Positions 1,613-48,642 of a stretch of 64,000 nt of DNA are shown here, piece by piece; within the stretch, counting starts at the first letter, position 1, and the number at the start of each line of letters is the position of its first letter. The stretch comes from Penicillus capitatus (Eukaryota; Plantae; Chlorophyta), in the NCBI GenBank assembly GCA_965649825.1, contig OZ287704.1:1-64000 (forward strand), written 5' to 3'. The position numbers and the translations under genes were made by a program. The notes under the pieces are model-generated. The model was given only the letters and a program-made list of their open reading frames with translations. It made no database searches and was not told where the DNA came from.

Positions 1613-3022
1613 ATGCAGCGACCCGCCTCCGTGTGCAAAGTGTCGGTGATTGATTTGAGGTGGCCGAAGAGTGAGCGTTGTGTGAGAACAGGTGTTGTCG
1701 GCAGTTCTCGAGGTATACATGTCCTCGTTGCAACTGCCCCTACTGCAGCCTCGACTGCTATCGCCAACACAGCGAAGCCTGCACCGAACGGTTCTACAAG
1801 TTCGGCACCTCTTCTGGCGAACCGCGCTCAAGCATGCTCCTCCTCAGGTCGCAGGTGCAGGAGGGCTTGCGCAACACGCGAGCCACCCCGGAAGAGAAAC
1901 GCAAGACAGAGGAGATCCTGGCCCGATTATACGAAGCCTCGTCGTCGTCGGAGTCCGATGACGCAGATATCTTCCATGGACTCTCAGAGGAGCAGATTTA
2001 CCGTCTTAAAGAGGTGCACCTCTACAGTTGCGAGACAGTACGCAAAGTGAAGGAACGAGTAGACGTGTGAAGGAGACGGAGAGGCAGATGTTGGTCATCT
2101 GGTGCCCGAATCGCTGTTGGCTTCCTTCCATCACCAGCTTCAGACCGGTTTCTCTTCGGATGTGATGCCGATCTTTACGCCGTGGTGGGAGAAGGCGGAT
2201 GCAGCGGAAGTGCAACTCTCGACTTCAGGGACATCATTGGTGGCAAGGTTGGACGAAGCAGCTTCCTCCCGGTCACAAGGTCGACCATCTCCACCCCGCA
2301 AACCGATACCGGCATTCGAAGCTCTGCACAAGGGGCCCGTTTCTGCCACGGTTCCACGGCAGCTGTTGCAGATTCTGTGAGAAACCTGATGCAACGACCA
2401 TCGGAAGGAATCTTGCAGCTGGGTGACTGTTGTAGATATGTCTACGCCTTTGTGTTGAGGAAATACAATGGCGATTGGGAATGGGATGCGACGCAGGTGG
2501 GTCTTCTCTGGACGTCACTCTGTTCGTGTTTCGACCGAAACAGATCGCAACTGGAGAGCTGTGCCGTCGTTGTGCAGGACCTCATGACATCGCTCTTGGC
2601 CGCTCCCGTTGGCCACCCCGACAACAAGTGCGGCCAGAGACACTCTCGCGAGTTCTCACTTCGCAGCGTGCAGGGTCATGGCCCTCTGCGTTCTGAAGGA
2701 CGTGACAAGGATGCTGTCCGTCGGCCGATGCGTCGTAATCCTGGCGCTGTGCGATGTCCAGCGCATGGCGCGTTCGTGCCTGAAACGTCACACATCCAAC
2801 GAGGGATCTCACGCTTCTGGAGACTCGAATGCGACACGCAGTCGCGCTTTACTTAAGGCCGGCCAGCACAAAATCACGTTCCTAATGTCCTGGACCAACA
2901 CGTCCGCCCACGACCAGCAGATTCGGGATCTCGCACGTCAAACCCTGTTCGAATATGCCCGACGTTGCAGCTACCGTGAGACACAGACGTCAGAAACCTG
3001 TACACTACAGTTAAGGGATTAA
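1613..3022 (+). CDS. ZNHIT2: zinc finger HIT domain protein (ZNHIT2-like), multi-exon
   Basis: Splicing GT-AG intron 1642-1691 gives [46 protein letters not shown], a zf-HIT Cys pattern. The last exon has [15 protein letters not shown], similar to the ZNHIT2 C-terminal motif. Stop TAA at 3020-3022. Confidence 0.75.
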
Positions 3023-3549
3023 GGCCGCCTTTGTTCTTCGTTCTCTTTCCAAATCGATCCTCCCTCGAAGAACTCTTTCTTCCAGATCGGCACCTTCGCC
3101 TTCACCTCGTCGATCGCCCAGGAGCATGCCTAACACAACGACCCAGTGACAATGCCTAGCGTGCGACCGCACTGACCTCGAGTGCCTCGCGTCGGTGGGG
3201 AGAGGAGACGGCGATGATGACACTGGGCTCTCCCACGTGGACCGTTCCGACTCGATGCGCCAGAGACACTTTACAGATGTCCCATTTCCTCAGCATCGTT
3301 CCACAGAGACTCTAATCTTCCGAGGATCACGTTCCGGGTGGTCTGCCCTCCATGTCCTACTTCCATCAGGCTCGTGGCCATTTCGGGATAGGCCTCGTAT
3401 TCGAGCTTCGTCACGCCGCGTCCCTCGAAGCTATCTCGCGTGACTCCGGTGAACGTGGCGATGGCTCCGGCCGAGGGTTCGGAGACGAACGACGTATAGC
3501 GCTCCATGCGCAACGGCTCCTCCTCGATTTCGACCAACACTCGACTCAT
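3019..3549 (-). CDS. MOCS2: molybdopterin synthase catalytic subunit (MoaE/MOCS2B/CNX6), multi-exon
   Basis: [13 protein letters not shown]...[32 protein letters not shown]; later exons give [20 protein letters not shown] and [28 protein letters not shown], all MoaE signature motifs. An alternative ATG lies at 3564. Confidence 0.92.
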
Positions 3550-3562
3550 CTCGTCAAATCGC

Positions 3563-4123
3563 ATGATGGCCCGCTGCTCGTTGCGTCTGGCCACTAGGGA
3601 AGGCCATTTTCTTCGCCGTCCTTTGCATTCTGCCCCCAATCCTCGGCGGCGTGCCGCGTGTCTGAGTGTGCGGAGTGAGATCTCCTATGTCATGGTCAAG
3701 CCAGACGGCGTTCAGCGCGGCCTCGTCGGCGAGATCGTGTCGCGGTTCGAACACAAGGGTTACAAACTCAAGGGCCTCAAGATGATGCAGTGTCCGCGCG
3801 AATTGGCCGAGCAGCATTACGTGGAGCTGCAAGACAAGCCCTTCTATCCCAAACTCGTGGACTACATCACGTCGGGGCCCGTCGTCTGTATGGCACTGGA
3901 AGGGAATGGCGTTGTCCGAGGGGCCAGAAATCTCATCGGCGTGACCGATCCAACCGAGGCCGCCGCCGGAACCATTCGAGGCGACTTTGCGATCGACAAA
4001 GGACGCAACGTCGTCCACGGCAGCGATTCGCCAGAGAACGGCATTCGGGAAATGGAGCTTTGGTTTCAGCCAGAAGAGATTGTTCAATGGGATCAGACCA
4101 ATGCACCGTGGATCGAAGAATGA
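3563..4123 (+). CDS. NDK: nucleoside diphosphate kinase with N-terminal organellar (probably plastid) transit peptide; intronless
   Basis: SYVMVKPDGVQRGLVGEIVSRFE...PGTIRGDF-like AGTIRGDF and GRNVVHGSDS (catalytic His). The roughly 35-aa Arg/Ser-rich N-terminal extension looks like a transit peptide. Confidence 0.97.
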   Translation: MMARCSLRLATREGHFLRRPLHSAPNPRRRAACLSVRSEISYVMVKPDGVQRGLVGEIVSRFEHKGYKLKGLKMMQCPRELAEQHYVELQDKPFYPKLVDYITSGPVVCMALEGNGVVRGARNLIGVTDPTEAAAGTIRGDFAIDKGRNVVHGSDSPENGIREMELWFQPEEIVQWDQTNAPWIEE

Positions 4124-4145
4124 GTGAGGCGACGGTCCGCGGGCG

Positions 4146-4720
4146 TCAATCGTACTCGAGTTCGCTCGGCATGATGGGTGCGTCACACGGAATCATCGAC
4201 TCTTTATTTTTGTCGCGCCTCATGGCACGGCGCATGTCCAGTCCATCTTCTGTCCCATTGTAATAGAGCAGCACTCTCCGGTAGACAACGTAGCCCAACT
4301 GTTGGTACATCTGAATGGCCACGGTGTTCGAGGCGCGCACGAACAGATCGACGAAGAATCCTTCGTGCACCGTCTCGGTGATGTCCTCGAGCAGAGCCAT
4401 GAGCTTGCGGGCGAGTTTCAGTCGGCGATACTCGGCCGCCACGGAGATGGCCGTGACGTGCCCATGCCAATTCTGCCTCTCTCCTTCGGCCTTGCCTAGA
4501 AGAGCCATGCGTTCGACGCAGGTCAGACCGTCACAGAGTGCTTGCCCAAGACGTAGCTGGTCATCTGCTGGCCTGGTCCCTCGGCGGCAATGCACATCTC
4601 GGGCCATGTGGCGAGGTATTGAAGGTAGAATTGGAGATTGTAGGTCTCGGTCAGGTGGTCCAAGTTGACGTGGTTGAAACGAAAGAGATCCTCGCAGCGA
4701 AAACGGCGCAGCGTCGTCAT
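4146..4720 (-). CDS. NAA20: N-terminal acetyltransferase B catalytic subunit (NAA20/NAT5), 2 exons
   Basis: MTTLRRFRCEDLFRFNHVNLDHLTETYNLQFYLQYLATWPE, then a GC-AG intron at 4496-4545, then GKAEGERQNWHGHVTAISVAAEYRR...FVDLFVRASNTVAIQMY. Confidence 0.96.
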
Positions 4721-4900
4721 GGCGATGCGTTTGCGCTGAGAATGCCGACATCTGTGGCCTAATGCTCAAATCTATAACAATGATGCCCCATCGCGTCCAC
4801 GGAGAACAGCAACCGCACGGTGAACTGAACCAGTCCCATCCCGCAATCATAACTTGGTCTGAGAAGCGCACATGTCTAGCATGAACGATGAGAATCGGGT

Positions 4901-7900
4901 TTAAGGGGGGACGGAATGCTCAGAGGACTGATCTGCCGAGACTGCGGAATGATCTGATGCGTCTCCTCCCACACATGTCCGACCATAGAAGGCGGTCAAC
5001 ACGAGGACTTTTCTGCTCAGACTGATGACATCCATGCGTCTCTCCTGCCTGGGAGAGATCTTCAGATTGTGCACTTCAAGTTTCAGGTCGACCACGATGA
5101 GGAGTCCACAGTAGAGACGATACAACCCATAGAGCAAGAACCCGATGTTCACGGCAAACGTAAAGATGATCATGCTGACGCGGCCTGGAGAAGTGGCCGA
5201 CGTATCATGGAGTACGATAGCAGCGAAGAACATAGTGATGGATGCGAAGAGCGACATCGATTCGAGGACATTGAGATCGATGGCATTGCTCATCTTGACC
5301 CAGGTGGCCGCCCATCCCGGCAAACGAATCAGCCGAAAAGTGCCGCCTGCATACTCGGGAGTGTTTTGGTGCTCCTCTGGGACTTTGAATGGCAAAATGA
5401 GTGAATGCAATGTGTGACAGATGACAAGGATGCCGACACACATCGCTGCTTGTAGTGTCGGTTCCAGATGAACGGCAAAGACGATGACGGTGGCGATCAG
5501 TGTTTTGCGGGCAAGGATGATCGATTCCCAGCCGTTTGTGTACCACTTCTTGCGGTAGGCTTGATAGAGAAACCAGTAACGGGCAACGAACTCCGTCTTG
5601 CGTCGGTTTCTTCCGTTGAGCGGCAGCCAGACAGCGATCCAGACGATGACGCAGAGCAGAAAGAACAGACCGACGATACCCGCAATGCCCACCGCCAGAT
5701 GTCTCCCCTCGTAACAAACCAGATTTGTATCTTCTGCCCAGACGTGTTGACCGACCGCCTCCGTAGCGTACTGCAGGTAAGGGTGGTCTGGGGAGAGGTC
5801 GGCATGGGAAGCCTGGATCTCGACGCAGTTGATGGCTCGGAGGAATTCTCGCGCAAGATCGATGTAGGAGAAGTAGAGAGCGACGATGCAGATGATGATG
5901 ACATAGGTGAAGAATCGCTGTCGAGCTTCCGCATCTGGCAGGCTGCTATTTCCCGACCGCATTCTGAGCAGATTGGTTACGAGACAGGCGAGCAGCAGCA
6001 CCAGCAAAAGGGCGACCAGAACGATCGCTGGTGTGCTGAGATGCAGCCACAGGGCGTTGGCGGAAGATGAGGTGTGATCTGCTTCGAAATGACATTCGTA
6101 TGGAACGGAGACAAGGAAGTTGGACAACCCGCCAAGACATCCTGGATGACACGTCCGTCACATCAGGGGCAGGGAGAGAGACAGAACCTTGCAGTTTAAG
6201 CAGTCCTTTCAGCACAGAATTCCAGTCCGTCTGCAGCCGCAAAGCGATGCTCGTCACTTGCAGATAGTTAATCAACAGCTGGAAAACGACAGTCGTGAAT
6301 GTGGCTGTCTGCCTCGTTGCCTGGCTTCTCACTTTGAGTGTTTCCGTTAGCTGAACGGTGGCGATGAGCTGCTTTGCAAAAATCTGCTGTGTATTGACGG
6401 TCACCGTTCCTGATTCGGCTGATCCATCTGCACAGCGATCGTTGGAGATGCCGTGGATGAAATGCACACCTGTGCGCTGCGAAGACTGCGGGGAATGGTC
6501 TTGTCGAGAGCTCGTCGTAGCCAACTGCTGAATCCCCCTCGGTCGCGTCCTCGTCACACATCGTAGCTCGTGTTTGACCAACTCAACGCGACTGTTCATG
6601 GACATCAGTGTCACGAGGCAATTCGCCCCGATCAGTATAAAGAGATATCCGCAGCTCAGCAGTAGCTGAAGGCTATTCTTGAAGTTCCCTTCGGGGCACT
6701 CTTTGCATTTTCGCGAATAAGTGTGACCGTAACCGTCTTGACATGACCCACAGAGCGGACCTTCATATCCTGTGGAGCACTGCTGATAATCCGCTGTCTC
6801 CATCGCCGTACTCTCTTGCCCATCCCGCCCGTCAAGGGCGTTCAGGTAAGATTGCAGTCTGGCACCGTCTTCGTAGAAGGCTACCAGACGTGCGCTTCTG
6901 CCATTGTAGGTGCAGGCATCTGGTTCGATGCACTGACGAAAGACAGGCGAGAAAGGAGTGGAGTGCCAGTATCCGTTCTTTGGCACCAGAGCCGCACCTC
7001 CACTGCATTCGGCGTTCTTCTCACAGCTCTCACACTTTTCCAGAAAGGGATCAAATCCGTACTGGTCGTGTGGGCACCTCTGGCAGATATTGACCTGATT
7101 GATCTCGCCTGGATAACACTCTCTGGTGGACAGCCCGACGTCGAGTCGGATACTCCGATCGCGTTCGCTGACGATCGTGAGTGTGGTGGAGACGTTGATA
7201 CCCCAGGCGGCTGTGTTGTTGATCACAGCAATGCCATTCGCTGCTCTGTACCTGAGGTCCCCAACCACGGCGTCCGACACCAGCACGATTTCCAGATTGG
7301 CATCGTCGACGCCTCGAACAATCGTCTGATTAAAGATGTCCTTCACCAGAATTCTGAGCTCCCGCGAGCATGACGCATTACGGGTGTCTTGGCAGGGAAT
7401 CCTCAACTCCTTTCCACTGGCGACGCGTTTCAACGGTCCGTTCCATCCTTCGATCACTAACGAGACGACATTGGTGGCGGCATCGGCCTCGTGAGCTACC
7501 CCATCATCCGATATCTCGTTAGCGGAGATATTCGAGCAGTACGATAAAAGCGATTCAGCTCTTGGAAGACTCCCTGTGAAGTTACGAGCGGTGACATGAG
7601 GCGCGTCGTCAGCACAAGCGACGGCAATTCCTTCCGGCAGACTTGAAAAGACGCCTCCTGCATAATCGGCTCTGTTCCGAGTTACCGTCACATTGGAGAA
7701 GACGAAGATCTGACAAGCGTCCAGACCGATAGCTATGGGGAAGCATGATTTTCTGTGGCCTTGATTCCAGTAGAGTGGATTCATGAACGCAGCAATAGCA
7801 CCTGGAGAGAACGATGAAGAAAGGTCGTTTCTTTACATAGGAAGGTACCTCCTACGACGGCCTCGTTCTCCATAAGCAGAAGATTGCCGAAAATCACTTC

Positions 7901-10062
7901 GACGGCCGTAAACAGCTGCACGTCCAAGAAGGATACACCAATGCCGCCTCCGAATCCCTCTTTCGCATTGGTTATGTACTCGAGCAGTGAAAAATTCCCC
8001 AGATGCCTCGAATAGTTCGGCGCCCGTTCGTGCTCGAAAGATAGTGGCGTGTAGCGTTGACTGGCATCCTCTAACGCCTTTATTTCTGAGGAATCGACCG
8101 GCAGTGCTCGGTTGTTGATAAACAAGCTGTCCGTAATCTGCATGACAGATTCAGTATGGGCATCTACGAATTGTGCACTTCACTTGCAAAAGAAGAAGTG
8201 GGTATAGTCCAGCACGAAAGTATAGACCGCCTCCTGTCACAGCCGTGTTGTTTCGAAAAATCGTTGGCCGCAGATCATCGGACACCACGTAAAAGGCAAC
8301 GACGCTCGCGATATGCATGCCGCCGCCAACATAGGCACGGTTGTTCTCGATAAGGAGGCCATGCAGCACAGCGACTCCGGTGCTTTCCTGGATGGTCATT
8401 GCACCTCCGCTGCGCATGGCCACATTGTCACGGAAGACCAAAGCGGCGAGATTAGTATCGCCTAGGCACATCGATCATCTGCTTGCTGAAGGAGAGATCG
8501 ATGCACTTACCTGCACTGTCAGAAAAGAGCCCTCCACCATAAAGGGCCGTCGAATTCTCGATGTAGCTGAGAAGTGATTTGTCTTCTGGGTCGGTGTCGA
8601 AATTCAGTATGGCATTCTGGTTCACCTCAATGGATCCACCGTAGAGAGCTCTACTGTGCAAGAAGGTCGTGTTGACGATAGTGAGATGCGAGGTGTCTTG
8701 GGAAATCGATCCACCTCTTCTCATAGCGATGTTCGATCTAAAGGTGCAGGTGGAGATTCTGTGCGGCCCCGTCACAGCTGAGAAGGAGCGAAAACTGAGG
8801 GCTCCGCCGTTGACGGCAACGTTGTCCAGGAAGGATATGTTCTTGAGCGTCCAAGCTCGAGAAGATGAATCCAGAGCTTCATGAGCAAGTGCCCCGCCGA
8901 CGTGCGGCGCCCGCAGAAAAGGCTCTGGCAGCTCAAAGCCATGCTGTGTCTCGCAAATAGCTGCATTTCGTTCAAAACGGGAATCGTCTATTCTGTATCT
9001 CCTCGCGATCTCGGACATATCCATTTGATTGCATAGCACAGCAATGGCACCCCCTCCTCGACAGCCGAGATTGTCTGAAAAGACAGATCGGCGGATGGAG
9101 ATTTCCATAGGACTGTGCGCAAAAACGGCACCGCCACGGCCGGCTTCGAGCGATGAAAAATTAAACAAATCCAGTGGACCAGCGTTTAAAGCTATCTCTT
9201 CTCCTTCTTCCGATCCAGCAGTATTGTTCTCAAATGTGGACCCCTCGATCGTCAATGTCGTATTCTGTGAGTTTCGGAAATAGACGGCGCCTCCAGTGAC
9301 GACGGCCGTGTTCTTGGAAAAGGTGGATTGGTTGATGACGATATCCGCATCCTCTGCGAAGATCGCCCCGCCCTTAGAGGCTCGGTTATGTTCGAATGTA
9401 CAGGATTGGAATCGGAGAACGGGTGATGCTGGACACACGTTATCAGCCGCACAGGCCTCTGCTCGGACAGCTGCTCCATGAATCTCGCCTTCTGTTGCGC
9501 CGTTGTGTGAGAAATGCACATTCTCAAATGTGGCTCTCACTCTTCGACGTCTGCCACGCTCGACGACGACGGCCTCTTCGGTACAGTGAGTGAAATACAG
9601 AGAGGATATTCGTGTGTGACCTCGCCTGTGTAAGACAACGTCCTCTCACGAAAGTGTGAGACAAAATCGAAGACGTACTGGATTCTCAACGCGTTCCGCT
9701 GTGCTCTGCGGGGACACCGAACGACGACAGGTGTCTCGCGCGCGGCTTTGAGTGTGACATTGCGCACAGCGATGATAAGAGTGTCCGTTAAAGCGATTTC
9801 CGCGGCGTCCACAGCGACGGTCTGTCCTGTCCGCAAAGTTAGCAACGCTTGTCGAAGCTCCGTTTCCGTTCGAACGGTAACAACCTGCGCATTCTCCTCC
9901 CGAAAACGCTCTCCTTGACGCACTACATTTTAAAGAAATCGACGCTCTCAGTCTGTATCACTGCACGACGAGCACGCACGAACCTCTCTGCGATAGAGAT
10001 AGGGGAAGGACAAAGAGGAGAAGCAATGCACAGCGGTAGTGTGTAACAGGCATCATGAGCAT
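4901..10062 (-). CDS. Pmp-repeat beta-helix / Cys-rich / multi-TM surface protein, paralog 2 (full length, multi-exon)
   Basis: Signal-peptide-like exon MLMMPVTHYRCALLLLFVLPLSLSQR at 10062. Repeated FxxN...GGA[I/V] motifs in 8452-9540. Cys-rich CYPGE...GYWHSTPFSP...CSTGYEGPLCGSC in 5946-7784, then LLINYLQVTSIALRLQTDW and the TM domain in 4901-6127. Confidence 0.88.
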
Positions 10063-11567
10063 GGCTTTCTGGAAGTGGACGTTGAGGGGATGCCCCTAAA
10101 CTGTTCGCAGAGAACACGTCCGATACGTTGGTGTACGAAATCTTTGTCAGCATAAGTGTCGTTGTCGCAACGGATATCGGACAATAACATGAGATGCAAC
10201 CGTCGAGTGAGTTCAAACGTACAAGGCTTCCTTCGCCTGCGACGTTTTAGGAAACTCTGTAGAAAGCCCCAAGCGAAGTGTGTAAAGTTCTTACTGAACT
10301 TCGTCATATCGCTCACTTCCATCGGTTTCTAAGAGAGCTTGAAACGTGACTCGACTATTTTCCGAAAAACGGCGACATGAGTTCTAACGTCGCTATTTGA
10401 TGATGTCTAAGCGTGACACAACAGAGAGAAATTGGATACAAATCTCATCCACCGAAATGAATAATTGTAAATCGAAATGGGGCATAGTAAAACATACTTA
10501 GACATGCGCAACGAGAGATTGAAAGTTGTCTGTTCGTTTTGCACAATGCTACTTTTGGAAACTAAAGTATCTATTGGCCGATTCGAAAATTAAACAGGCC
10601 ATGATAAGAACCCACTTCAGTTTTTGCCGAAACCAGTCCTTGAGATCCTTGGATTCAGTGAAATCGGCAAAATGCCTTGTCACTTTTCGTCGAGATAGCC
10701 TTGAGCGATACAAAATAGACTTCGAACAGAAACCCTGTACTCATTCATTATGTGTTTTATTAACATGTTCTAATTCAAAGTTAAAAGCCAGCACGAAAAG
10801 TTGAAGAGAAGTACGCATAGACGGATCTGATGACACGTCGAGAATCGAGGCCGGAAACAAACTAACCGAACGCCGCTTTGGAGTTTGAAAACGATTATTG
10901 ATGACGCAGAGAATCTTGTGAGGCATGTGAAGCGTTCCACTGTATCAAGCCCGTCATGAAATGAGACCGCTTTGTGAAATGTTTCGAACCCACTTTGGCA
11001 TTTTGCAAGTCAGGTAGGCAGATGTCAGTTCTCTTCAACTCATTAAAATTCGCTTTGTTTGGTTTTCGATATTCAATTCGCACTTTCTATATTGATTAGG
11101 AAGATTTCATACCGATTCTAAAAACGACAATTTACTTTGAAACGTTTCAACAACGGTTGGCGATGTACAAACCGAAATTGCTGTCTTTCAAAGTGGTCCA
11201 ACCACGTTTTACAACAAGTTTGAAAATAACCGATACAATCTTGCCTATTTAAGCGGTTTGGTTCTTGCAATCATACATCAGTTCACTCAGATTCTTGGCC
11301 GTTGCCGAATCGGACTCGATCGCGCGGTTCGTCAACCCGTGGTCGATGTCACTGTCTGTTGAACGACCTCGAATGACAGGCACAGGGTGAGAAATCGCAG
11401 TACCAGGTGTCAACGGATTCTCGAATCGGGACCACGGAAGGACTCCGACCCTCACAGCATTCACAACTCCTCTTATCGCGCCACTCTCGATGACACGTCT
11501 CTGAATTCACTTTCTTAAACTTATATTAAAAGAATGACGACCAGAATGTTGTGTGCGATTCTCGGCC

Positions 11568-12664
11568 TTAGGCGATTTCCATTAAAATAGAAGCACGGCC
11601 GTTTTCGACATCTTGATAGAATCCTCGTCTCATGGGATCGACATCGCACAGTTTTCGATAGATCTTCTTGATCTGCTGAGATGATGCGCGACCTTCACGT
11701 CGGTCCCTGACCTCCAAGAGCACCGCATACGTTAGCAGAGTCCACTTCGAATCAGGATCCAATTCCATCAACTCCTGTTCGAAAAAAGCCACCTCGTCCT
11801 TCAGCACCGCCGCCGTCTCCTCACTCTTTTCCAGATGAAGAAAGTGACTCAACAACCATCGATAGTAGATCCAAGCGCTGGAATCATCGGGATCGGTGAC
11901 AAATGCAGAGTGGACGGTCTGGAATTCGATTTTGAGCGTCTCCAGCGAAACCCACCCGTTCTGAGGCCGCTCTTCCGTAGCCGCTCCTTCTTGCTTGAGG
12001 AGATCTGTGAGCGAGATCGTCGCGATCGGTCGATGGAGTGCCTCTAAGCAACGACTTCGGTGATGCCATGCTGAGTAATTGCTAAAATTCTGTTCAATCA
12101 TTTCTTGACTGAACCCCAGTTCGATCTGCGGCGCTCTCTCACTCTTCTTCGCCAAGAAACGACGATAGTTCCAGGCATGAAAATTTCGACTGTCCTCTGC
12201 TAATTTCTCCTCGACAAAGCGAAACTCTGTTTGCATGTCACACAGGCCAAGCCCCACCAACCAACAACGATGCTGCCAGGCACTGTAGCTCTTGGGCAAG
12301 TTGGAGAGAGCTGCCGAGACGACGGCAAGTTCTTCGAGGCACAGTGCCCTCTTCTTCTCTTCTGTCGTCTCTTCCGAACCAAACAACTGTCATCACACGG
12401 CATGTCACTCTTCTGAAAGTGTGATATTGATGGAGTTGCTTGTGTCAGTGCATCTTTGCGGTAGTTCCATGCGGTGTAGATTTCGGCGTTGAGCGAGAGG
12501 AGCTTTGCCGATGTGGCGAATGTCTGCGCGTCGTATTGACGATCCTGTACACGCGTGAGCACATCCGTGGTGGCATTCTTGAGCAACAGTGTCTTCTTCT
12601 TGAGCTTTTCGCGCTGCTCTGTCGTCGGTTCAAATCCTTTCGGAGGACGGGGACGTCCATGCAT
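11568..12664 (-). CDS. RABGGTA: Rab geranylgeranyltransferase type II alpha subunit
   Basis: N-terminus MHGRPR, then EIYTAWNYRK, PKSYSAWQHRCW, DSRNFHAWNYRRF, NFSNYSAWHHRS and DPDDSSAWIYYRW (PPTA repeats). C-terminal DPMRRGFY. GC-AG intron at 12387-12439. Confidence 0.95.
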
Positions 12665-12672
12665 CGCATCCA

Positions 12673-14558: not shown

Positions 14559-14586
14559 TGAACGACTGGAAGCAGACAAGGCCTTT

Positions 14587-37533: not shown

Positions 37534-40500
37534 CTAAACTGCGGATTCCATTTCTACTGTTCCCGAAGTCGTACGTCCTTGATCGCTCTTTCCTCCCATG
37601 AGCACATCTACCTGTATTTTAACGAGATGACATAGTTTGGCGAAGAGATTTGCGGCTCCCAGTTCGTTGCCTTGAACCGTAACAAAATTTGGATCGATCA
37701 TTTCGAGCTTCAGATCGACGAGGACATTCAATCCGCAGTACAGACGATACAACATGTAAGAAATAAAAACAATGCTGACAGCAAAAGCAAAAATAATCAT
37801 GACCAGTGCTCCGAGATCTGTGGCGTTCGGATTATTGAGTATAAGAGCAGAGTAGAAAATAACGATAGAGCAGAAGAGCGAACCGCTTTCGAGCGCGTTC
37901 AGCGTAATTTTGTTGTTGAGCAGGGTCCACTGTTCAGCTAGCTTGTGTATATGCAGGCAACGGAAGAGCGATCCTGCATAGTGTGGGACATAGTAATGGC
38001 CTTCTGGCCTCTTGAATGGTAGGGCCATTGTATGAAAGCCTTGAAAAATAATAAGCACGCCCACACACATGGAAGCTTGGAGATCTAAATCAAGATGGAC
38101 GGAATATACAACCACCGCCGCAATGCACGCTTTACGGATCAGAATCATTGCCTCCCACGGACTCCGATACCACTCATCGCGATACGCTTGATAGATGAAT
38201 CCGTAGCGTGAAACGAAGACGGGGCGTGTCTTGGACCCTTGGTGAAAAGGCATCCATAAGACAATGAATGTAATGATGCCGAGGGCCATGACGAGACCGG
38301 CAATGCCAGCCATGGCTGTGGGGAGATGGGTATCGTCGAAGCAAATGAGGTTGGTATCTTCCGCCCAGACATTATCCCCGCGGCGAATGGCACATGAACG
38401 GTAAGGATGGTTTTCGTCTTCCTCTTTCCCCGTCTGATTCTTGATTTTATCCACTTCGACGCAGTTGATAGCTCTGAGCAGTTCTCGAACCGTGTCGATG
38501 AATGAGAAGGAGACGGTGACCAAAGCAATGACGACGATACTCGTCACGAGATGCTGAGATGTCGAGGCGTTCTGTCTGTTCTGTGCAGTGCTCGTTGTCA
38601 AATGCCGTGTGAGCCAGAAGACGGTGTAGACCACGACGAGAGCGATCGCCACAATGACTGGCGTGAACAGACGCATCCAGATGGCGATGACGGAAGGCGG
38701 CCATGGATATTCATCATCGAAATTGCACTCGAAGGGAGCAGTAAACGCTTCACTCGTAACGCCAACGAAGAGACCTATGGTATCACCGTACCTGATGATC
38801 ATCTAACCGTCGATTGTTGGGAGAGGCACCTTGGACGGAGAGGAGATTAGAAAGGGCAGATCTCCAATCTACTGGCAGTCTGAGAGCGATGCTCGTGATC
38901 TGAAGGTAGTTGATCAGGATCTTGAGCGTCTCCGTCAACTGCACAGCGGCATCTAGGTTCTGTTTCAGAAGGGCGTTGTACTCGACTTCGGATCGGTCTG
39001 TCACGCCTGTCGTCCCACTGACTACAGGCACAGTGCATATATGAGTGATGCATCCTGCCGATAGAGATCATTGCGATCACACCTGTTCTGCCTTGTAACG
39101 CATGCATCTCACGAACCATGTTCTCCGTCACTGGCGGACTGCGCTTGAACGCCGGGCGATGCTGGACGGCATCCTTCCGTGCTTCGAGACGCGCCAGTTC
39201 AATTCGCATTCTGGTGGACAGCAGTGTGACAACACAATTGATGCCGATCACCACAAATGTCCACAGAACGGAAAGAACAGTAAAAAGACGTGTATACTTT
39301 ACTGTCGACGGACATGATTTGCACTCCCCGCTGAAAGAGCGACCAAAGTGTTGCAAACAGGATCCACAAAGAGGCCCATCGTATCCCTCGACGCACTGCG
39401 GATAGTCTGAGAAGTTCATCGGCATTCGCGTGTCTGGATGGGTCTCCGCCAGCATCGACTGAATCTCATCCCACTTAGCTTTGAGTCTCGTGCTGTTGGC
39501 TGAGTACTGTATCAGTCGCTGCGTCCTCTCTGTGTATTTGCATGCTGTTGAACGGACACATCGGTTCATAATGGGAGAGAAAGGGGTCGAGTGCCAGTAG
39601 CCATCGGCAGGCACGAGTGTGGCATTGCCATAGCACTCTGCATGTTCCTCGCAGGGCAGGCAATGTCCGTGGATGTTAAAACTGTACGTTCCTCTGTCGC
39701 ATGGATCGCATTCATCCCCTCTCTTATTCACCTCTCCCGGCAAGCAATCTCTGACAGAGAACTGAACCGTCACATTAACGGATTTGTTGTTTTCGCTCTT
39801 GACGACGAGTGTGGTGCTGCTCATGTTGACGCCGGTGACTTTGGTATCGTTGATGACGATGATACCCTCCTGAGCTGTGTATCTCAATCGCCCTGTCACC
39901 TGTTCGCTCTCCAACGAGACGCTGAGATCTGCCAAGCACTCGTCTCAGGGAGGCAGATGTTAGGCAGGAGAACACGGACCTGCATCTGGTATACCTCCGC
40001 GAATGGTTTGCCCAAAGGCATCTTTGACAGCGACTTTCAGAGGATACCGTTTGATCTGCGTCGAATTGCCATCTGTCCAACGGTACTCGAGCTTATCTCT
40101 GCTGGCGAAGTTTTCTAAGGAACCACGTTGATGTTGGATGACCAGCGATTCGGCTTGGGTTCCGGCATCTGCTCCATCCCTGCCGCTCTGATCCTAATGA
40201 CAAGCTGTCAGGGCACGCCGCCAACGACATCCATCTGTACTTTAAGGGCATTTTGGCCGATGTCGAGACACAGCAGGTCTTTGTATTGATCGAGTTTGAT
40301 CGTGTTGTTCAGCTGTTTCCGAAAAATCTCTCTGAATGTCGCGTTCTTTCCCGGACGGTCCAGATCACATGTCAAAAGGATTCTCTCTGGATGTGCCGTA
40401 AACACACCGCCGGCAAATTTGGCTTTGTTCTCGGCAATGGTCACATTGCTGAGGACAAATCTCCGACAGAACTCAAATCCAATGACCGCTTGTTGACATC

Positions 40501-43343
40501 TGGAATCCGCAGTGCCATTCCAATCTACCTTGGAAAACTGAACATAGATGCCTCCTGTCACAGCCAGAAGAGATCACACATAGATACCGAGCCCTGCACA
40601 AGATCGAACCTCCGACATCTGCTTCGTTGCCATCAATCACGACATTCTGCATGACAATGTCTGAGATGGTAAAGATATGGATATCAAAGAGATTGAGACA
40701 GATGCCGCCTCCCTGGCCATTCTCCAGCACTGTCAGCTGCCGGGCGATCCACGCTTCATCTACGGTGCTCAGAGAAGAGAAGTTTTTCGGCCATCCCGTT
40801 AACCGTAATGTGTAATCTTCCCCTTTGCGTACTAAGGCGGCGATATCACTCTTGTCATAGTGTCGCACTTGGTTCCCCACAAAGCGGGTATCATTTATCA
40901 AGATGTCCAGTGTGATGTAGTGTCCGGGTTCGAGATACATTCCACCTCCGTTCACTGCCGAATTATTTCGAATGATTGTTGGGCGTCCTCTGTGTGATGT
41001 CATTGTCAAATTGGCAGTCGCATAGATATCAATCCCACCACCCACAATAGCACAGTTCTTCTCGATGACGACACCGCGAAGCACCACAGGATGCTTGGCA
41101 TCGTCCACTCGAATCCCTCCACCACTGCGTATGGCTTTGTTGTCTCGAACGACCAGAGCACTCAGATTTGACCCTCCTACGAAGACAGATGCAAAACAGC
41201 TGCTTTGAGAGTAAGAGGGAAGGAATCTTACTGTCGAGCTCGTAGAGAAGGATGCCGCCTCCGTACAGGGCAGTGTTGTTTGAGATGACGGAGATCTTGG
41301 ATAAATCTGCCGAATCTTCTTGGACACTCAGTGAGCTTCCATGCCATATCATCAGACCACCTCCTCCTCTCGCTATGCCTTCGCTAATGTTGGTCGCGAT
41401 CAGCACGATATGGGCATGCCGTGCCAGAATACTCCCTCCAGCAATCATGACAGAGTTTCTCTTGAATATACAGTCTGTGATATTTCTGTCTACCATCGGC
41501 GCTCCGCTAATGTACAGGCCTCCTCCCGAAACGGCCGCATTGTTCAGGAACTGCGATCGCTGGATCGTCCATTGCAATGGTACATCATCGTCAACCACAT
41601 GTGAAATGGCCCCTCCTGTGCCGACAAACGATTCGAGGATATCCACCGTGATGTGCTCTCCACAGCAACTTTGAATGGAGTTGTCGCTGAACACAGAATC
41701 GGACACATTAAACACCGCAGCATTCTCCCAGCCTTCCTCTCGCTGGCCATTCCACACACTCACAGCAGCCCCTCCTCCTGGTGCACGATTGAGATGGAAC
41801 GTGCATTTACTAAGGGTCATCCTCTCAGGGTTTAATGCACAAATGGCGCCGCCTAGACTGTCTTTCTTTTGAGGGACGGTACTCGGACTTGGATAAAGCA
41901 ATGTTAAGTTGAGATCCTTCACGTCCCAGGTGACGTTATTTTCGGTAAATATTGAGTTTCTGATGTCGAGTTCCGTTCTTGGCCTTTTCACGAAGATGGC
42001 ACCTCCACTAACGATTGCTGTGTTTCGCAGAAATGTGGAGTTGTGTATTATCAGATAATAATCTTCGCCATAGATAGCTCCTCCTTGATAAGCCAGGTTC
42101 CTTTCGAATACGCTTGAGACGATCTGCAGTCTGGGTCTGAACACAGAATCGGACACATTAAATACCGCAGCCTTATCCCCGCCTTCCTCTCGTTGGCCAT
42201 TCAACACACTCACAGCAGCCCCTCCTCCTGGTGCACGATTGAGATGGAACGTGCATTTACTAAGGGTCATCCTCTCAGGGTTTAATGCACAAATGGCGCC
42301 GCCTAGACTGTCTTTCCTTTGAGGGACGGTACTCGGACTTGGATAAAGCAATGTTAAGTTGAGATCTTTCACGTCCCAGGTGACGTTATTTTCGGTGAAT
42401 ATCGACTTTCTGATGACGAGTTTCGTTTTTGGCTTTTTCACGAAGATGGCACCTCCACTAACGATTGCTGTGTTTCGCAGAAATGTGGAGTTGCGTATTC
42501 TTAGATGATAATCATCGGCATAGATAGCTCCTCCTTGATAAGCCACGTTCCTTTCGAATACGCTTGAGACGATCTGCACTCTGGGTCTGAAGCATGGTTC
42601 TCTTATGCACCCCAGCATTCTTATTGCCGAGCCATTCATAAAATACTCTTTTCTGCCGTTTCTAAGAAACTGGATGCGCCTGAGGGTAACGGAACGATGT
42701 CCCTGCTGTCCCTCGTTGCGGGATCCCTCGATCACGATGGCGGATGCGCCAATGCACTTCGTAAAATGCAAATCCGACAATTCTATTCCATGACCCCTAA
42801 ACAGCAAAACGGTTCATCTTGCATGGACGCGCACGCGTCTTTCGTCTTTACCCACCTCAAAAGAAAAGCACTTTGCGCGGGTGGACAATAAATCTTCGTC
42901 TCGAACTCGGGATTTCCTCTCAAGATAAGACGCCGGGAGTCAACAACGACTGTCTCTGTAAGTTGTAGCCGCGTCGCATTGAGGAACACGACGATAGGGC
43001 TCTCTGAAACGACGGACAAATTGCCATGAAGCTCAGCTTCGGAAGAAACAGTCACGTAGTCCTCCTGAATGCCGTAACCTGAAATCGACGTCAACTTCGT
43101 CCTCCCTACATGTCCGTTATACACGTCAAACTGCCAGAAGGATGCAAGACGCGTTTCGGAGATTGGAGGAGGGAGACGCGACAGCAACGTCTGGCGTCAA
43201 GTCAAGCGACAGAACAACTCCCAAAAGAGGGAGTCCGCTGCTGTACAGGTTACGTATCGCGTAGGAGGATTACTTAATGGCGCGGCACATCCAATTCGTG
43301 CTGCGCAGAGGCAGAAGGCGAAGAGATAACACAGGATGGGCAT
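37534..43343 (-). CDS. Pmp-repeat / Cys-rich / multi-TM surface protein, paralog 4 (full length, with internal 150-aa duplication)
   Basis: Signal-like MPILCYLFAFCLCAARIGCAAP, GGAI repeats in 41029-42807, CLPGE...GYWHSTPFSP...CVEGYDGPLCGSC in 38847-39935, TETLKILINYLQITSIALRLPVDW and the TM domain in 37534-38802. Confidence 0.88.
41689..42591. repeat. tandem direct duplication, 2 x 450 bp, in frame (150 aa), inside paralog 4
   Basis: ACACAGAATCGGACACATTAAA at 41691 and 42141; CTGGGTCTGA at 42131 and 42581. A by-eye alignment gives 23 mismatches in 450 bp. Confidence 0.97.
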
Positions 43344-44221
43344 TTCAGCAGGGACAACGTGACGAGGGAGAGCAACGAAAGCTTTATTAACGGGAAGACA
43401 CGAGAAAAGTGAACGCATGGCTGGTGTTTGCCGACGTGACTGTCAGTAATCGTCAACAAGAAAAACAAAGCGTGCAGCAGTAAACACAACACGTGTGCGG
43501 ATCACAAGTATGTTTTACATACATTCTAATTGATCCGGCCATTTTGAGCCGCACGGTCACCACGACGCTTCCCCTAAAGTTAGTCATACGGTTCACTGGG
43601 ATGCCTGTCGGTTCATGTGTATTTCACGGACGCAGTACGCGCGATATCAGATCGACGTCCCCAAGAAAAAGAAGCCGCCTGCGGGGCAGAAACGATGTGG
43701 ACATGCCGCAGATGAAGTGATCGTGGCGTTGACGGTTTCATGACGGATTCGCGCGTCCGCGGCTCGGAGTGTTTTTCAGAAACTTTTCTCTAAGACATCC
43801 ATTCTGGAAGAAGTGTTGTGACAGGCATCTGGACATCTCACCGTTCGTGGCATGGCACCTGCTCCACCCTGGTAACGGAGATACGCCAATATCCTGATCG
43901 TTTCGACGATGTGACGACGGATGTTGACATAAAAGACGTTACCGTCAAGAAGACCAATCCAATCACATGACTGTCAATCATAACCATCGGCCGTCTGACG
44001 TCTGCAAAGCGCGCGATATCTATCTGGACAGGCATCTGTCGATGTCACATCAGATCTCCACGTGCCGTTGCTAGGGAAAGATGCTTTGCTCCGATTTCTT
44101 AGCAGACAACGGCATTTCGCTATCTATCGCCGCCAAGATGCCGAATCGAAAACGTCACGTCTATCGGTCCGTCACATCAGCTATCGTCGTCATTCGATTA
44201 CGGACGTGAGGAATCTCGGCG

Positions 44222-47200
44222 ATGGACTCCGGTCTCGAGAGTCTTCTGGCGGGATGCTTGTCCAAAGTCAAAGTCCCACAGCACTATGACCGCGTGTTTA
44301 AAGACGAATGCATGTTTTCGTTCGATACTCCGCTCTCCGAGGGCGGTCTCTACTTGAACCTCAACACACATCAGTCCTTTGGCAAGGAGTACGTAGACAT
44401 GGTCCATCAATCCCGGACGGAATTTCCACTCTATCTGCATATTAAATGGACACGGGTATTGGGCCACTTGTCTGTCTGCAGTGGGATATGGCATGATGTG
44501 ACAGGTGCCTCTATCTGAAGAGGAACTGGAGAAGCTGGAAAGCAAACCAGAGAAGATGGCCATTGGTATGGAGGGAGGTTTTCAGGTGGACAAAGAGAAA
44601 TTCAAAATTGAAAAGTCCTATGCGTTGGTGTTCTTCCCTGACGAGCAAACCTTTCCGCTGCCCAATCCAGACCTCCCCCTTCAACTTCAACTCGCCATTA
44701 CTAAAATTCAAGTCCCCTCCCGGCACCAAACTGCCGAAAAGAGTGATCCGTTCTGAAATGGTGTAGGAGCATCAAAGTGTCACATCACAACAAGAGACGG
44801 CCGCCTGGGAGGATGAGAAGATCGTGAGTCGATACGCCCCTGATCTCGAACAGCTCCATAAGGACGTGACGATCTCGATGGATCCATCTCAGTGGGTCTG
44901 TGAGGAGAGCGGCATGAGAGAGAATCTCTGGCTCAATCTGTCAACGGGTCACATCGGATCGGGTCGTCCAGTGAGAGCCCAGACGCCTCACACTTGCTTC
45001 TCTCATTAAGCTCTTTGTTGGGCAGAACTGGGCCGGAACAGGCGGGACAGGTGCTGCCCTTAAGCATTACGAAGCAACTGGCCGGCTTTATCCCTTGGCC
45101 GTCAAACTGGGTACCATTACTCCTGCTGGAGCAGATGTCTACTCCTATGCAGCAGATGAAGACTGTATGGTCATCGATCCATACCTGGAGAAACATCTCT
45201 TGCATTGGGGCATCGATATGAAGCAAATGGAAAAGACAGCCAAGACATTAACCGAGATGGAGGTGGAATTGAACATGGCCTACGAATTCAACAAGATCAC
45301 GGAGGCACTGACGGAACTCGTTCCTGTGTATGGACCGTGCTATATCGGACTTAAGAACCTTGGCAACAGCTGCTACATGAATGCCGTTCTCCAAGTGCTG
45401 TTTTGCCTCCTTGGAGGCGCCCTTGAAGGAAAGCGCCCTTTTTATAGGTTCTGTGGATGATTCCTGCCGTGCGCCAGCGTTACTTGCAGAACCATGAACT
45501 CATTTTCATGTCTGCTGGAAACGACCCCAGTGAAGACTTCTTTGTCCAGATGGCCAAACTCGGAGCCGCAATGATCGATGGCCGAACGGGACACAACGCC
45601 TCAGGCATGGATGGACACGTCCTTATGGGTGACGTGCTTTGATGGACGTCTCGTTCGTAGAAATGGATGACAGAATGGATCCCGATGCATGGAGTGTCCG
45701 TCCCTGGTCATTCAGATCCCTTGTGGGTCGTGGGCATCCCGAGTTCGCCTCTTCTCATCAACAAGACTCACACCACTACTTTACACATCTCCTGGATGTC
45801 ATGGACACGGCAGAGAAGGCCAATCGCTGTCGTCTGTCCGAAGCAGAAGAGGTCGATCTATCCTAACGCTTTTTTGGTTGGTGATGAGATGGGTATGAAT
45901 GCCGCAGGACTACCGTCTGACTTCTGCCATGTTCTCTTTTCAGACAGAGGAGCGTTTATACTGTCCGGAGTCAGAAGTAGTGGGTTACAAAACGGGACAG
46001 AGTTTGGTATTGGAGCTCGATATTCCGTTGGAAATGGCGATGAACAAATCAGAGGTGGACAATTTCAAAGACAGGGAGATGAAACGACAGAAGCTGCAGG
46101 AATCGGGCGCCGATGCCGAGATCTTGATCGAGCAGATGGAGAACGGCGAACAGAAAATTGTGGAACTCACCATCGACGATGCCACAGAGAAAGTCCTCCC
46201 CGAGGCACTCTCAACAACATCGACGACATCTCCACCTCACAGCCGCGCCTGACCGTCTAGGTTCCTTTCAGCGCATGCCTGGCACAGTACACGGCGGATG
46301 TGGTGGTTGAAGACTACTACAGTCGAGGACTCCAACGCAAGACGCAAGCCGTCAAGAACACAAAGATCAAGACATTCCCTCCTTTCCTTATGATCCAACT
46401 CAAAAGGTGATGTCCCATCGAGCGGCACGTGTGAGAGATGCATCGGTCGGTTTAGGTATTATGTGGACGAGAGATGGCAGCCGAAGAAGATGGAAGTTCT
46501 GGTGGAGCCTCCAGAAGAGCTCCATCTGGAAGGACTCCGAGCAATGGGGCCTCAACCGAACGAAAACGTCCAGCAAGAGTCGGATGACGAGGAAGAAGGC
46601 ATCAAAGCCGATTCAAACCTCGTTTCGGAGCTCGTGACGATGGGATTCAGTGAGAATGGCTGCAAACGGGCTGCCATTGCTGTGAAGAACGCCTCCCTCG
46701 AAGCTGCTATGGACTGGGTGTTGACACACATGGATGACGCCGATTTCAATGCACCGATCGAAAGTGAAACCTCTTCCGCACGAGATGCCTTCTCATCTTT
46801 TCCATCCAGCGAAGCAAAAGAACGCGGAGCCGGATAAGGAAGCCGTCGACTTGCTGCAGAAGATGGGATTCTCGTGGGAGGCGGCTACGGCGGCTCTAAT
46901 CGAGAACGCAGGCAACACAGAGGCTGCTGTAGACTGGCTGGTGAGCAAAGGCTCAGAGCTGGAATCGGTTGTGCCAGTCATTCTGGCCGATCGAGAGGCA
47001 AAGGCCGAGCCGCCGGCCTTCCTCGATGGCGAAGGGCATTACACGCTGGTCGGATTCATCAGTCATATGGGTGCCAGTACGGCTTGCGGGCATTACGTCT
47101 GTCACATCAAGAAGAAAGACAGATGGATTCTCTTCAACGACGAGAAGGTGGCGATCTCGGAGGCGCCGCCACGCGATTTGGGCTACATGTATCTTTACAG

Positions 47201-47231
47201 ACGCCTAGATGTCCAGGGGGTCGAAGAATGA
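44222..47231 (+). CDS. UBP14: ubiquitin carboxyl-terminal hydrolase 14 / isopeptidase T (USP5/13 family)
   Basis: YDRVFKDECMFSFDTP, ENLWLNLSTGHIGSGR (ZnF-UBP), AVKLGTITP, Cys box GLKNLGNSCYMNAVLQ, two UBA-like segments (MGFSENGCKRA; MGFSWEAATAAL) and His box FISHMGASTACGHYVCHIKK. Confidence 0.97.
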
Positions 47232-47259
47232 GATGATGGATGCTCGCATTTAACGTAAT

Positions 47260-48642
47260 ATGTCGTCGGTTAAGATCCGGACCGTCACGTATTTTTCCTC
47301 CCTTCCGCACGAGGACGCGCTGTCTAAAGCGTCGCAGTTCTTGTCGACTGCACGCGAGCGATATACCGATGCAGGTTACACGGTTCAATCGGGACGCATT
47401 GCGACAGACGTCGTCTCCTCGCATACGGCTCGATGGACAGATCTCGATCGAGAACTCAAAGATCGCGATCTAATACTTAACGCCGCGCCGATCTCCGATC
47501 GCTCGACGATCGAGGCGCTTCCGGATCTCCTCGCTGCAACAGAAAACATCTTCTGCCATGTGGCCCTCGAAGAAGACGCTTCACCCGCTCTGCTTCAGAC
47601 CATTGCCTCGACCATTCTGCAGGTTGCTGAAAAAGCAGGTACTGTTTTCGGAAGACTGGATGGCGGATGGCTTGCCTTGATCAGGGGTGCATGGAAATTT
47701 TCGTCTGGGTGTGGGTTGTCAATGTCCGCCCTACATTCCTTACTTTCCATGTTCCTTTGCGGAAGAAGGACAGCCACCATCCTTCGCCATCGGCCTCGAG
47801 AGCTCCGGAATTTTGCAAGAGATTTCAGTGCGCTGTGATCGGGTGGCGATTGGAAATGAGCAATGGATAATACGATAGGTCGAAAGGGGTGAACGGGGAC
47901 AACTCACAGACAGCCTCAGAGACGCCCTCCTGCCCATTCTGCGTCGCCTCGAAGTCATCAGCAAAGACATTGCTGCCGAGACTGGCATACACTACCGACA
48001 TGTCGACAGCAGCATCTGTCCTCGACTAGAGACGCCGCCGATGACGGAGATCTGGCAGCGAATGGGAATCGATCCCTTTGGAGCACCCGGTTCCTTGTCT
48101 CCATAACAGACCTCTCTATAACAGAGGTATCTATCCGTAGGGACGCTGAGTGTCTGTTCGGCAATAACAAAGGCACTTCAATCGCTGCACGTACGAAAAG
48201 GAGGGTTCTCTGGACTGATGTTGCCAGTCTGCGAAGATGCTGGCCTCGTTGCAGCTGCTAAACAGGTCATCTCCTTTTGTGAGGACCCTTGTTGCGGAGA
48301 TCCATTGTCTGCTGGCAGAAGTCTTTTGGAATTCGGGATCTGTTGCTCTACTCTACCGTCTGTGCCTGTGGTCTGGATTGTGTTCCTGTTCCGGGTTACG
48401 GTGATGATGCTCAAGAGAACGTAACCCTCGAGAGGCGCATGGCATCATATTTAGCAGATCTCTGTTCCCTTGCCACCAGGTTTCTCACACATCTCACACA
48501 ATCTGTCCTCTCACTATCGTATTCTGCTAGATTGAAGAAGCCACTCAGTTGTCGATTTCTGCCGGCCCATGGGAGAAAACCAGGCGAGAAGACAACGTTT
48601 AATTTTCCGTATCTGCTTGACGGCAGCGTCATGGAACTATAA
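47260..48642 (+). CDS. DUF711 (UPF0210) family protein, multi-exon
   Basis: MSSVKIRTVTYF, SFAIGLESSG, PFGAPG|TLSVCSAITKAL, GFSGLMLPVCEDAGL, LLLYSTVCACGLDCVPVPG and LKKPLSCRFLP. Confidence 0.85.

Follow-up and report, generated by a model that had tools for sequence, protein, structure and literature searches.

A short motif shared by the introns of neighbouring genes in one chromosomal region of the green alga Penicillus capitatus

The first 64,000 nucleotides of contig OZ287704.1 of Penicillus capitatus (GenBank assembly GCA_965649825.1, forward strand; hereafter the window) contain a short motif that recurs in the introns of unrelated neighbouring genes. The 6-nt core of the motif is present, in either orientation, in 26 of 56 high-confidence introns, where one or two introns per orientation are expected by chance. 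The original prediction, made from the letters of the window, had proposed about 20 such introns, and this number proved right or low. Based on sequence comparison, we tentatively read the motif, at somewhat less than even confidence, as a selected DNA-level element that would be recognised as double-stranded DNA and would be tied to a chromosomal domain. Recognition as double-stranded DNA fits the properties of the motif better than any RNA-level role because the motif is short and strand-symmetric with respect to transcription, is conserved and positioned equally in both orientations, forms phased clusters and palindromes, is confined to one region and is biased towards one chromosomal strand. 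The regional restriction, the orientation with respect to the chromosome strand and the spacing of 10–12 or 20–22 nt are new here. A literature search on introners and intron features of Bryopsidales genomes revealed no description of such a motif.

The motif and its host introns

Two relatives of the window organism were used for comparison. Relative B, a sister genome 86% identical to the window, is represented by a 1.6-Mb contig from ENA (loci L001 and L005), which is colinear with window positions 1516–38220 at 83–87% nucleotide identity. Six other loci (L006 to L011, ~130 kb) were drawn from the genomes of the window organism and of B, and three of these loci share the contig of the window. 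Relative C, obtained from Logan (L003), is syntenic but distant, with 65–76% identity in coding DNA and 44% GC. Genes could not be delimited from codon usage alone, which separates frames by only ~0.18 bit per codon and chained everything together via cheap introns. Conservation in relative B was therefore added, and exons were chained into gene models by dynamic programming, with a score for synonymous as opposed to radical differences from B and with conservation of GT and AG as a requirement. Listing every GT..AG pair that joins open frames proved too permissive, as did testing for an intron locally around each motif. The predicted introns have a median length of 50 nt. After splicing, the PPT1 model can be aligned along its entire length with the bovine protein, seven junctions included; CIAO1 and its human counterpart align in a single stretch, and the BiP intron agrees with the BiP alignment. 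The BiP gene (26538–28700, minus strand) is clearly recognisable, and its closest named relatives belong to the green algae, with Caulerpa lentillifera first at 86% amino-acid identity, which suggests an affinity to the siphonous Bryopsidales. Pfam matches and gene models place CAND1, XPOT, PPT1 and BiP on the minus strand and CIAO1, GRP94, MnmE, the ZNHIT2-like gene and UBP14 on the plus strand, in agreement with the strands originally assigned.

The motif occurs in two related forms, M1, (T)CTCAC[T/A]CTTTT, and M2, TGATGTGAC(GT), which have the core TCAC/GTGA in common. On both strands of the window there are 16 exact matches to AAGAGTGAGA, compared with 0.23 expected and a maximum of 2 in shuffled sequences, and 23 matches to GAGTGAGA, compared with 4.95 expected. 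An unbiased k-mer enrichment ranks the same motif first (CTCACTCTT, 19 versus 0.8; TCACTCTT, 31 versus 3.3) and also yields M2 (TGATGTGAC, 16 versus 1.0); relative B has the same k-mer enrichment. Alignment of 50 motif instances shows information at ~12 positions only and none in the 14-nt flanks on either side. The similarity between introns is thus limited to 10–12 nt, and the flanks are random. The exact 10-mers at 27464, 16666, 12137 and 9535 are exonic chance matches that encode K-S-E-like stretches.

Motif copies are often clustered. Successive TCAC pairs on the same strand number 26, compared with 3.1 expected; 12 of them are 9–13 nt apart (0.56 expected, shuffle maximum 3) and a further 4 are 20–23 nt apart. 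Copies therefore recur at 10–12 and 20–22 nt, which is the spacing of helical turns. Tandem duplication of the motif unit could be an alternative source of the 9–13-nt spacing. In a recurrent composite, TCTCACACA is followed after a few bases by TCTCACTCTTTT. Inverted motif pairs are seen as well, together with one perfect palindrome, GTGTGATATCACAC. The palindrome (17134–17147, minus strand) opens a CAND1 intron, of which it occupies bases 1–14, and its first half doubles as the donor; in relative B it is one base off perfect. M2 is often extended to TGATGTGACGT (for example at window positions 29016–29027, 24001–24012 and 33283–33296), which contains TGACGT, the core of a bZIP site of the cAMP-response-element (CRE)/as-1 type. 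A bZIP gene is present in locus L009, on the same contig as the window.

Two RNA-level roles were considered and rejected. The folding of 16 motif-bearing introns gave z-scores of +1.2 to -1.9 with the motif mostly unpaired, and a general role as an RNA hairpin is therefore unlikely. A function as an in-frame stop codon that elicits nonsense-mediated decay was rejected, as the T-rich orientation contains no stop codon.

Distribution, orientation and conservation

The motif is strongly restricted to introns. Between positions 1516 and 34760 the density of the 8-mer TCAC[AT]C[AT]T is 7.1 per kb in introns, 0.9 per kb in exons and 0.27 per kb in intergenic DNA, and several of the exon matches are clearly introns missed by the model. 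The single intergenic match falls in the unmodelled part of XPOT. Some of the individual sites proposed earlier required correction. The RABGGTA site at 12405, taken to be intronic, straddles the end of an exon and the donor GTGACA. The sites at 1667, 30222 and 44737 do lie in introns, but match the motif at only 8–9 of 10 bases.

Both orientations occur within introns, as had been claimed. In 85 predicted introns the 8-mer is forward with respect to transcription 18 times and reverse 13 times (p = 0.47), and the commonest sense-strand 6-mers are about as frequent as their reverse complements (GTGAGA, 12 versus 11; GTGTGA, 11 versus 11). The sense strand reads TCTCACTCTT in PPT1, BiP, XPOT and the GRP94 intron 31354–31405. 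It reads AAGAGTGA in CIAO1, in the CAND1 introns 18367–18420 and 18157–18206, in MnmE (13061–13106), in the ZNHIT2-like gene (1642–1704), in the GRP94 intron 30212–30257 and in UBP14 (44712–44766), such that GRP94 carries both orientations, as noted originally. In either orientation the motif is located mid-intron, at a median distance of ~19 nt from the donor and 24–26 nt from the acceptor. The distance from the motif end to the acceptor ranges from 3 to 48 nt in introns of 46–64 nt and is thus not constrained. Motif-bearing introns are not visibly longer than other introns.

The orientation follows the chromosome strand. Of the intronic copies, 24 have the T-rich form on the minus strand of the window and 7 have it on the plus strand (p = 0.003). 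Counted by the majority within each gene, the polarity is 10 versus 0 with one tie, and the strand of the motif is independent of the strand of the gene (Fisher test, p = 0.64). Consequently, plus-strand genes (ZNHIT2-like, MnmE, CIAO1, UBP14) carry the reverse orientation and minus-strand genes (PPT1, XPOT, BiP) the forward orientation.

The motif is also confined regionally. The 67 matches of the 8-mer in the window are distributed over consecutive 5-kb intervals as 4, 7, 8, 11, 15, 7, 5, 3, 4, 1, 1, 1 and 0. The introns that bear the core (1/7, 1/7, 4/8, 5/12, 8/13, 6/8, 3/7, 2/5, 2/8, 1/7 and 0/3 per 5 kb) follow a bell-shaped distribution that peaks at 62–75% between 20 and 30 kb. When a single codon-only predictor was used for all regions, the core was found in 21 of 48 introns (44%) at window positions 1.5–35 kb, in 5 of 26 at 35–64 kb, in 3 of 61 (5%) at the six other loci of the same two genomes and in 0 of 18 introns of relative C. 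A Fisher test of the 1.5–35 kb region against these six loci gives p = 1e-6. Raw motif counts in L006–L011 are at or near chance, and M2 shows the same regional pattern. This regional occurrence is unlike that of a core splicing signal, which would be genome-wide.

Comparison with relative B shows that motif positions are 92.1% identical whereas other intron-core positions are 73.3% identical, a difference that was not reached in any of 2000 random motif placements inside these introns. Identity is 90% for forward M1, 89% for reverse M1 and 100% for both forms of M2. In ~20 of 37 introns, M1 or M2 lies in the longest block of perfect conservation, and in the intron alignments the motif is usually the surviving island in otherwise diverged sequence. 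Exact 8-mers are intact in B in 13 of 24 cases, compared with our own neutral estimate of ~8% (0.73 to the 8th power). Nonetheless, there is turnover, with 11 copies specific to the window, 8 specific to B and 13 shared. Judged from these alignments, the motif is under apparent purifying selection relative to the neighbouring intron DNA. The earlier idea of decayed copies of a mini-element is at odds with this conservation.

The age of the introns was assessed by mapping the flanking peptides of each intron onto relative C. An intron is present at the same position in C for 16 of the 18 motif-bearing introns that could be determined; the two others (19777 and 29392) are absent there. The introns are therefore old, and the recent intron gain for which an ortholog comparison had been proposed is not what this comparison finds. 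The orthologous introns of C lack both M1 and M2 and end in GTTTTAG instead. By this comparison the motif arose inside existing introns, on the branch that gave rise to the window organism and B.

Features of the window

The motif-bearing introns are listed in Table 1.

Table 1 Location of motif-bearing introns and related features in the window.
Feature	Position	Strand	Remarks
Motif-rich chromosomal domain	1500..48500		core ~10–35 kb, from 5-kb counts
ZNHIT2-like intron	1642..1704	+	AAGAGTGAG and TGTGTGAGA on sense strand (reverse class); 8-mer fully conserved in B
MnmE intron	13061..13106	+	AAAAGAGTGAGA on sense strand (reverse)
MnmE intron	13300..13346	+	GACGTCACATCAG (M2), then AAAGTGTGATG
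CAND1 intron	14842..14899	-	two forward copies (TCACACTT), spacing 20 nt
CAND1 intron	16461..16507	-	AAAAGTGTGATG on sense strand (reverse)
CAND1 intron	17084..17147	-	begins with perfect 14-bp palindrome GTGTGATATCACAC
CAND1 intron	18157..18206	-	inverted pair TTCTCAC...GTGAGAA; AAGAGTGAGAAC arm alone conserved in B
CAND1 intron	18367..18420	-	AAAAGAGTGAGATA (reverse), the sole conserved block
XPOT intron	19731..19777	-	GATGTGACA (M2); intron missing in relative C
XPOT intron	20138..20185	-	GTCACTCTTTTTCACACTTTTCACAG..., two forward copies, spacing 10 nt
XPOT intron 3' end	21095..21104	-	forward copy TTCTCACTCTTAG; intron 5' end not fixed
XPOT intron 3' end	21854..21863	-	forward copy, then M2 (TCTCACTCTTCTGTCACATCAG); intron bounds not fixed
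XPOT intron	22387..22435	-	two forward copies (GTCACTCTTTG), spacing 12 nt; 23-nt conserved block
PPT1 intron	23990..24032	-	GACGTCACATCATCC (M2)
PPT1 intron	24580..24629	-	TCTCACACAT-TCTCACTCTT, forward, two boxes, spacing 10 nt
PPT1 intron	24728..24780	-	CTATCTCACTCTTTTGCAT (forward)
PPT1 intron	24874..24928	-	GGTCACACTTTTGC (forward)
PPT1 intron	25009..25063	-	TATCTCACACTTTTGATGTGAC (M1 fused to M2)
CIAO1 intron	25572..25624	+	AAGAGTGAGA and TGTGTGAGA (reverse); not conserved in B
CIAO1 intron	25787..25834	+	AAAAAGAGTGAGATAG and TTTTGTGTGAGATAG (reverse), spacing 20 nt; conserved in B
BiP exonic chance match, not an element	27464..27473	-	encodes KKSEI
BiP intron	28219..28274	-	CACATTCTCACTCTTTT (forward)
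GRP94 intron	28990..29038	+	GTGATGTGACGT (M2)
GRP94 intron	29392..29438	+	degenerate inverted pair, canonical in B (TCTCACACTTTTG...AAAGAGTGAGAA); intron missing in C
GRP94 intron	29566..29620	+	GGTCACATCACGTC (M2), orientation opposite to the copy at 28990
GRP94 intron	30212..30257	+	GACCAAAAGAGTGATGCA (reverse); 18-nt conserved block
GRP94 intron	30909..30961	+	weaker forward-type copy (GCACTCTT...ATCTCACACAAATG); poor conservation in B
GRP94 intron	31354..31405	+	CTATCTCACTCTTTTGCAT (forward)
Intron of unnamed gene	32208..32263	-	GATGTGACAT (M2) immediately 3' of donor
Intron	33256..33304	-	AAACGTCACATCATTT (M2); 18-nt conserved block
UBP14 intron	44712..44766	+	GAAAAGAGTGATCC (reverse); codon-only model, no B comparison

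The predicted introns between window positions 1500 and 48000 have unusual splice signals, with donors that conserve barely more than GT (GTGTGA, GTGACA, GTCTCG, GTTCAC, GTCCAC) and acceptors that are often ACAG or TAG without an adjacent pyrimidine tract. Intron lengths fall in a narrow range, 41–64 nt in the window and 38–52 nt in relative C, where the introns end in GTTTTAG.

The middle of XPOT (~21.0–22.1 kb) has no gene model, and the two motif copies in it were placed at intron 3' ends only. Between the window and B, the stretch 21030–22110 (minus strand) has an identity above 93%, which exceeds that of typical coding DNA, and part of the stretch cannot be modelled as exons. It includes several ATGATG...CTGA pairs that resemble C and D boxes, and a weak, sub-threshold Rfam match to the C/D-box small nucleolar RNA (snoRNA) SNORD67 at 22025–22104 (E = 0.5). 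This stretch may harbour intron-hosted snoRNAs.

A gene-free segment of ~1.26 kb at 10300–11560, with no gene predicted on either strand, has the lowest GC content in the window (42%). The colinear alignment with B breaks there, with about half of the segment aligned, and the motif polarity is unchanged across it. The segment may represent a spacer rich in promoters, an origin or a centromere-like element. BiP (26538–28700, minus strand) and GRP94 (28900–31640, plus strand) are divergent genes separated by a spacer of ~200–250 bp, an arrangement kept in both B and C.

Long, mostly single-exon open reading frames (ORFs) at 4900–10150, 35230–42810 and 54550–63530, and also in L006–L011, belong to a large lineage-specific family with faint matches to the Pfam families Chlam_PMP and Beta_helix. 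These ORFs are interspersed with housekeeping genes. The family has at least 40 paralogues, nearly all of them in ENA metagenome assemblies of these organisms and a few in Logan assemblies; only one is also found in NCBI. The window itself is 99.88% identical to a public ENA long-read metagenome contig of 593 kb (L002), where it corresponds to positions 46,543–110,542 in reversed orientation. An exact-sequence protein look-up of the 422-residue window ORF at 37534–38802 gave no record because the window differs by 0.12% from that public contig. Locus L006, which lies on a different contig of the sample that yielded the window contig, contains a Ty3/gypsy-type retroelement (3184–7445; matches to RVT_1, rve and aspartic protease). 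Retroelement coding sequence is thus present in the genome, although none was seen in the window.

Interpretation and alternative explanations

Interpreted as DNA-level signals, M1 and M2 would constitute a short cis-element, most simply the sites for a putative sequence-specific binding protein. The motif would have evolved in the free middle of pre-existing ~50-nt introns after the split from the nearest sampled outgroup. Selection would keep the motif, which would be tied to a domain of roughly 35–45 kb rather than to splicing in general. Introns would host the motif since neither coding sequence nor the very short promoter spacers could accommodate it. The putative function would concern the domain, namely its chromatin, its replication or the organisation of the chromosome. 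A more specific proposal is that a strand-polarised, selectively kept motif marks a domain of tens of kilobases via the introns of about a dozen unrelated neighbouring genes. The motif would then be a eukaryotic counterpart of regional recruitment motifs, such as the male-specific lethal (MSL) recognition elements (MRE) and rex, or of polar architecture motifs, such as KOPS and Chi or oriented CTCF sites, and would be read by a DNA-binding factor for replication, chromatin or folding, not for splicing; we regard this proposal as doubtful.

Several known systems share part of these properties. Intron 1 of Chlamydomonas RBCS2 contains an orientation-independent enhancer, and motifs of intron-mediated enhancement are known in plants. 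Like intronic enhancers and homotypic clusters of transcription-factor sites, the window motif is short, orientation-independent, conserved with turnover, helically phased and occasionally palindromic, and M2 contains the bZIP-like TGACGT. Unlike such clusters, it is essentially absent from promoters and intergenic DNA, extends across about a dozen neighbouring genes and exhibits a strand bias. The Drosophila MSL recognition elements, the C. elegans rex/MEX motifs and the polar motifs (bacterial KOPS and Chi, and CTCF by its orientation) act on whole chromosomes, replichores or domain borders. They resemble the window motif in that a short motif is enriched in one territory, often in introns, and in that the polar examples are oriented with the chromosome, whereas the window territory spans ~35–45 kb and no switch of polarity is seen in it. 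The periodic An/Tn clusters (PATCs) of C. elegans are compositional A/T runs over long introns. They too are intron-resident, strand-symmetric DNA signals with ~10-bp periodicity, whereas the window motif is a specific 10–12-mer with a GC-containing core in 50-nt introns.

A number of observations weigh against a DNA-level element. The motif is nearly absent from intergenic DNA, with 1 match in 3.7 kb versus 30 in 4.2 kb of intron, which is unusual for a transcription-factor site and expected of an element linked to splicing. For a binding site, approximately one copy for every two introns is also very dense. The TCACACTT variant may favour the sense strand (6–8 versus 1), which hints at an RNA-level component. 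The introns are predictions, checked against solved proteins for PPT1, CIAO1 and BiP only. The polarity test was post hoc and involves one 64-kb window. On the same contig, L009 has 7 versus 4 copies in the predicted direction (4 versus 0 for the 9-mer), numbers too small to serve as confirmation, and L010 and L011 are at chance, with too few copies for a polarity test. In addition, the ~130 kb of other loci are a biased sample, as all were reached via one paralogous gene family and are poorer in introns.

The first alternative is a locally self-copying or concertedly evolving micro-repeat. Templated repair or short-tract conversion would spread it from one intron to others close by, always in the same chromosomal orientation, and the repeat would be tolerated in introns only and would itself be functionless. 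Such a process would produce the bell-shaped density about 20–30 kb, the uniform chromosomal strand whatever the strand of the gene, tandem copies at 10–12 nt, which is the length of the unit, ongoing turnover between the window and B, and the absence of the motif from relative C. We consider this explanation unlikely. The 10–12 nt of similarity are too short for homology-driven conversion, neither target-site duplications nor terminal repeats were seen, and motif-bearing introns are not visibly longer than the rest. Moreover, the differences between the window and B resemble substitutions and not clean insertions, the consensus is the same in both species, and orthologous motif positions are conserved well above their flanks.

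The second alternative, which appears improbable, invokes RNA-level splicing elements of two complementary kinds. The sense-strand UCUCACUCUUUU would be a module of branch site and pyrimidine tract, AAGAGUGAGA or GAUGUGAC would be a 5'-splice-site-like element or a purine-rich enhancer, and both would offset very weak donors. Known combinations of branch site and polypyrimidine tract (UACUAAC in yeast; the fused ACTAACACACAG in Trichomonas and Giardia) are strand-specific signals found throughout the genome at a set distance from the acceptor. The window motif resembles them in being intron-only, at about one copy per motif-bearing intron and sometimes two, with a lineage-specific consensus in which CTCAC conforms to yUnAy and precedes a T-run; the A is located ~16–38 nt from the acceptor in forward introns. 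The donors are indeed very degenerate (GTGTGA, GTCTCG, GTTCAC, GTCCAC), and the different 3' signal of relative C, GTTTTAG, implies that splice signals shift in this clade. The core T-S-A is self-reverse-complementary and therefore provides U-N-A in both orientations. ACACUU is complementary to AAGUGU, next to GUAGUA, in the U2 small nuclear RNA (snRNA). However, the sense strand is not preferred, and the same 10-mer has the same flanks, mid-intron position and conservation in both orientations. Whereas a branch site is constrained in strand and place, the motif is orientation-free and variable in position, at 3–48 nt from the acceptor, and its orientation tracks the chromosome strand and not the gene strand. 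Most introns elsewhere in the genome and at 35–64 kb of the window lack it. A search for snRNA genes with which to examine U1 and U2 pairing found none in the window, L001, L003 or L005. There is no need to invoke an element that can be spliced either way round, as suggested in the original prediction, since almost all of the real donors and acceptors are located outside the motif.

The original interpretation joined two ideas. Its orientation-free, DNA-level site is supported by the lack of transcriptional bias, the equal position and conservation of both orientations and the strong restriction to introns; its introner-like family is not. In the latter scheme, the introns would have been made by a small intron-generating transposon that inserts either way, with the motif as its remnant. 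Introners, as described in Micromonas, Aureococcus, dinoflagellates and others, likewise form intron families that share sequence in both orientations to the gene and are common in algae, and their working definition requires similarity that reaches both splice boundaries and excludes similarity confined to the interior (PMC9860276). Despite the two orientations, the short and uniform introns and the donor-like and branch-site-like appearance of the two strands, an introner origin is very improbable, as the 10–12 nt of internal similarity stop short of the splice boundaries, 16 of 18 motif-bearing positions are old introns common to an outgroup that lacks the motif, the motif is constrained and not decaying, and the real splice sites lie outside it. 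Target-site duplications or terminal repeats are not visible in the aligned instances.

The usual view of short introns is that of near-neutral spacers with splice signals as their only content, and here half of the introns of a gene neighbourhood carry a conserved, orientation-free motif. Either way, one false positive for the introner model is removed, and for intron motifs that are shared, the age of the introns and the extent of the similarity should be tested before transposition is inferred. If the motif is a splicing element instead, it would represent a rare strand-independent and region-specific mode of intron recognition. If it is a true DNA-level signal, compact genomes such as this one would park chromosome-level information in their introns, and the motif would provide a sequence handle on the factor that reads it.

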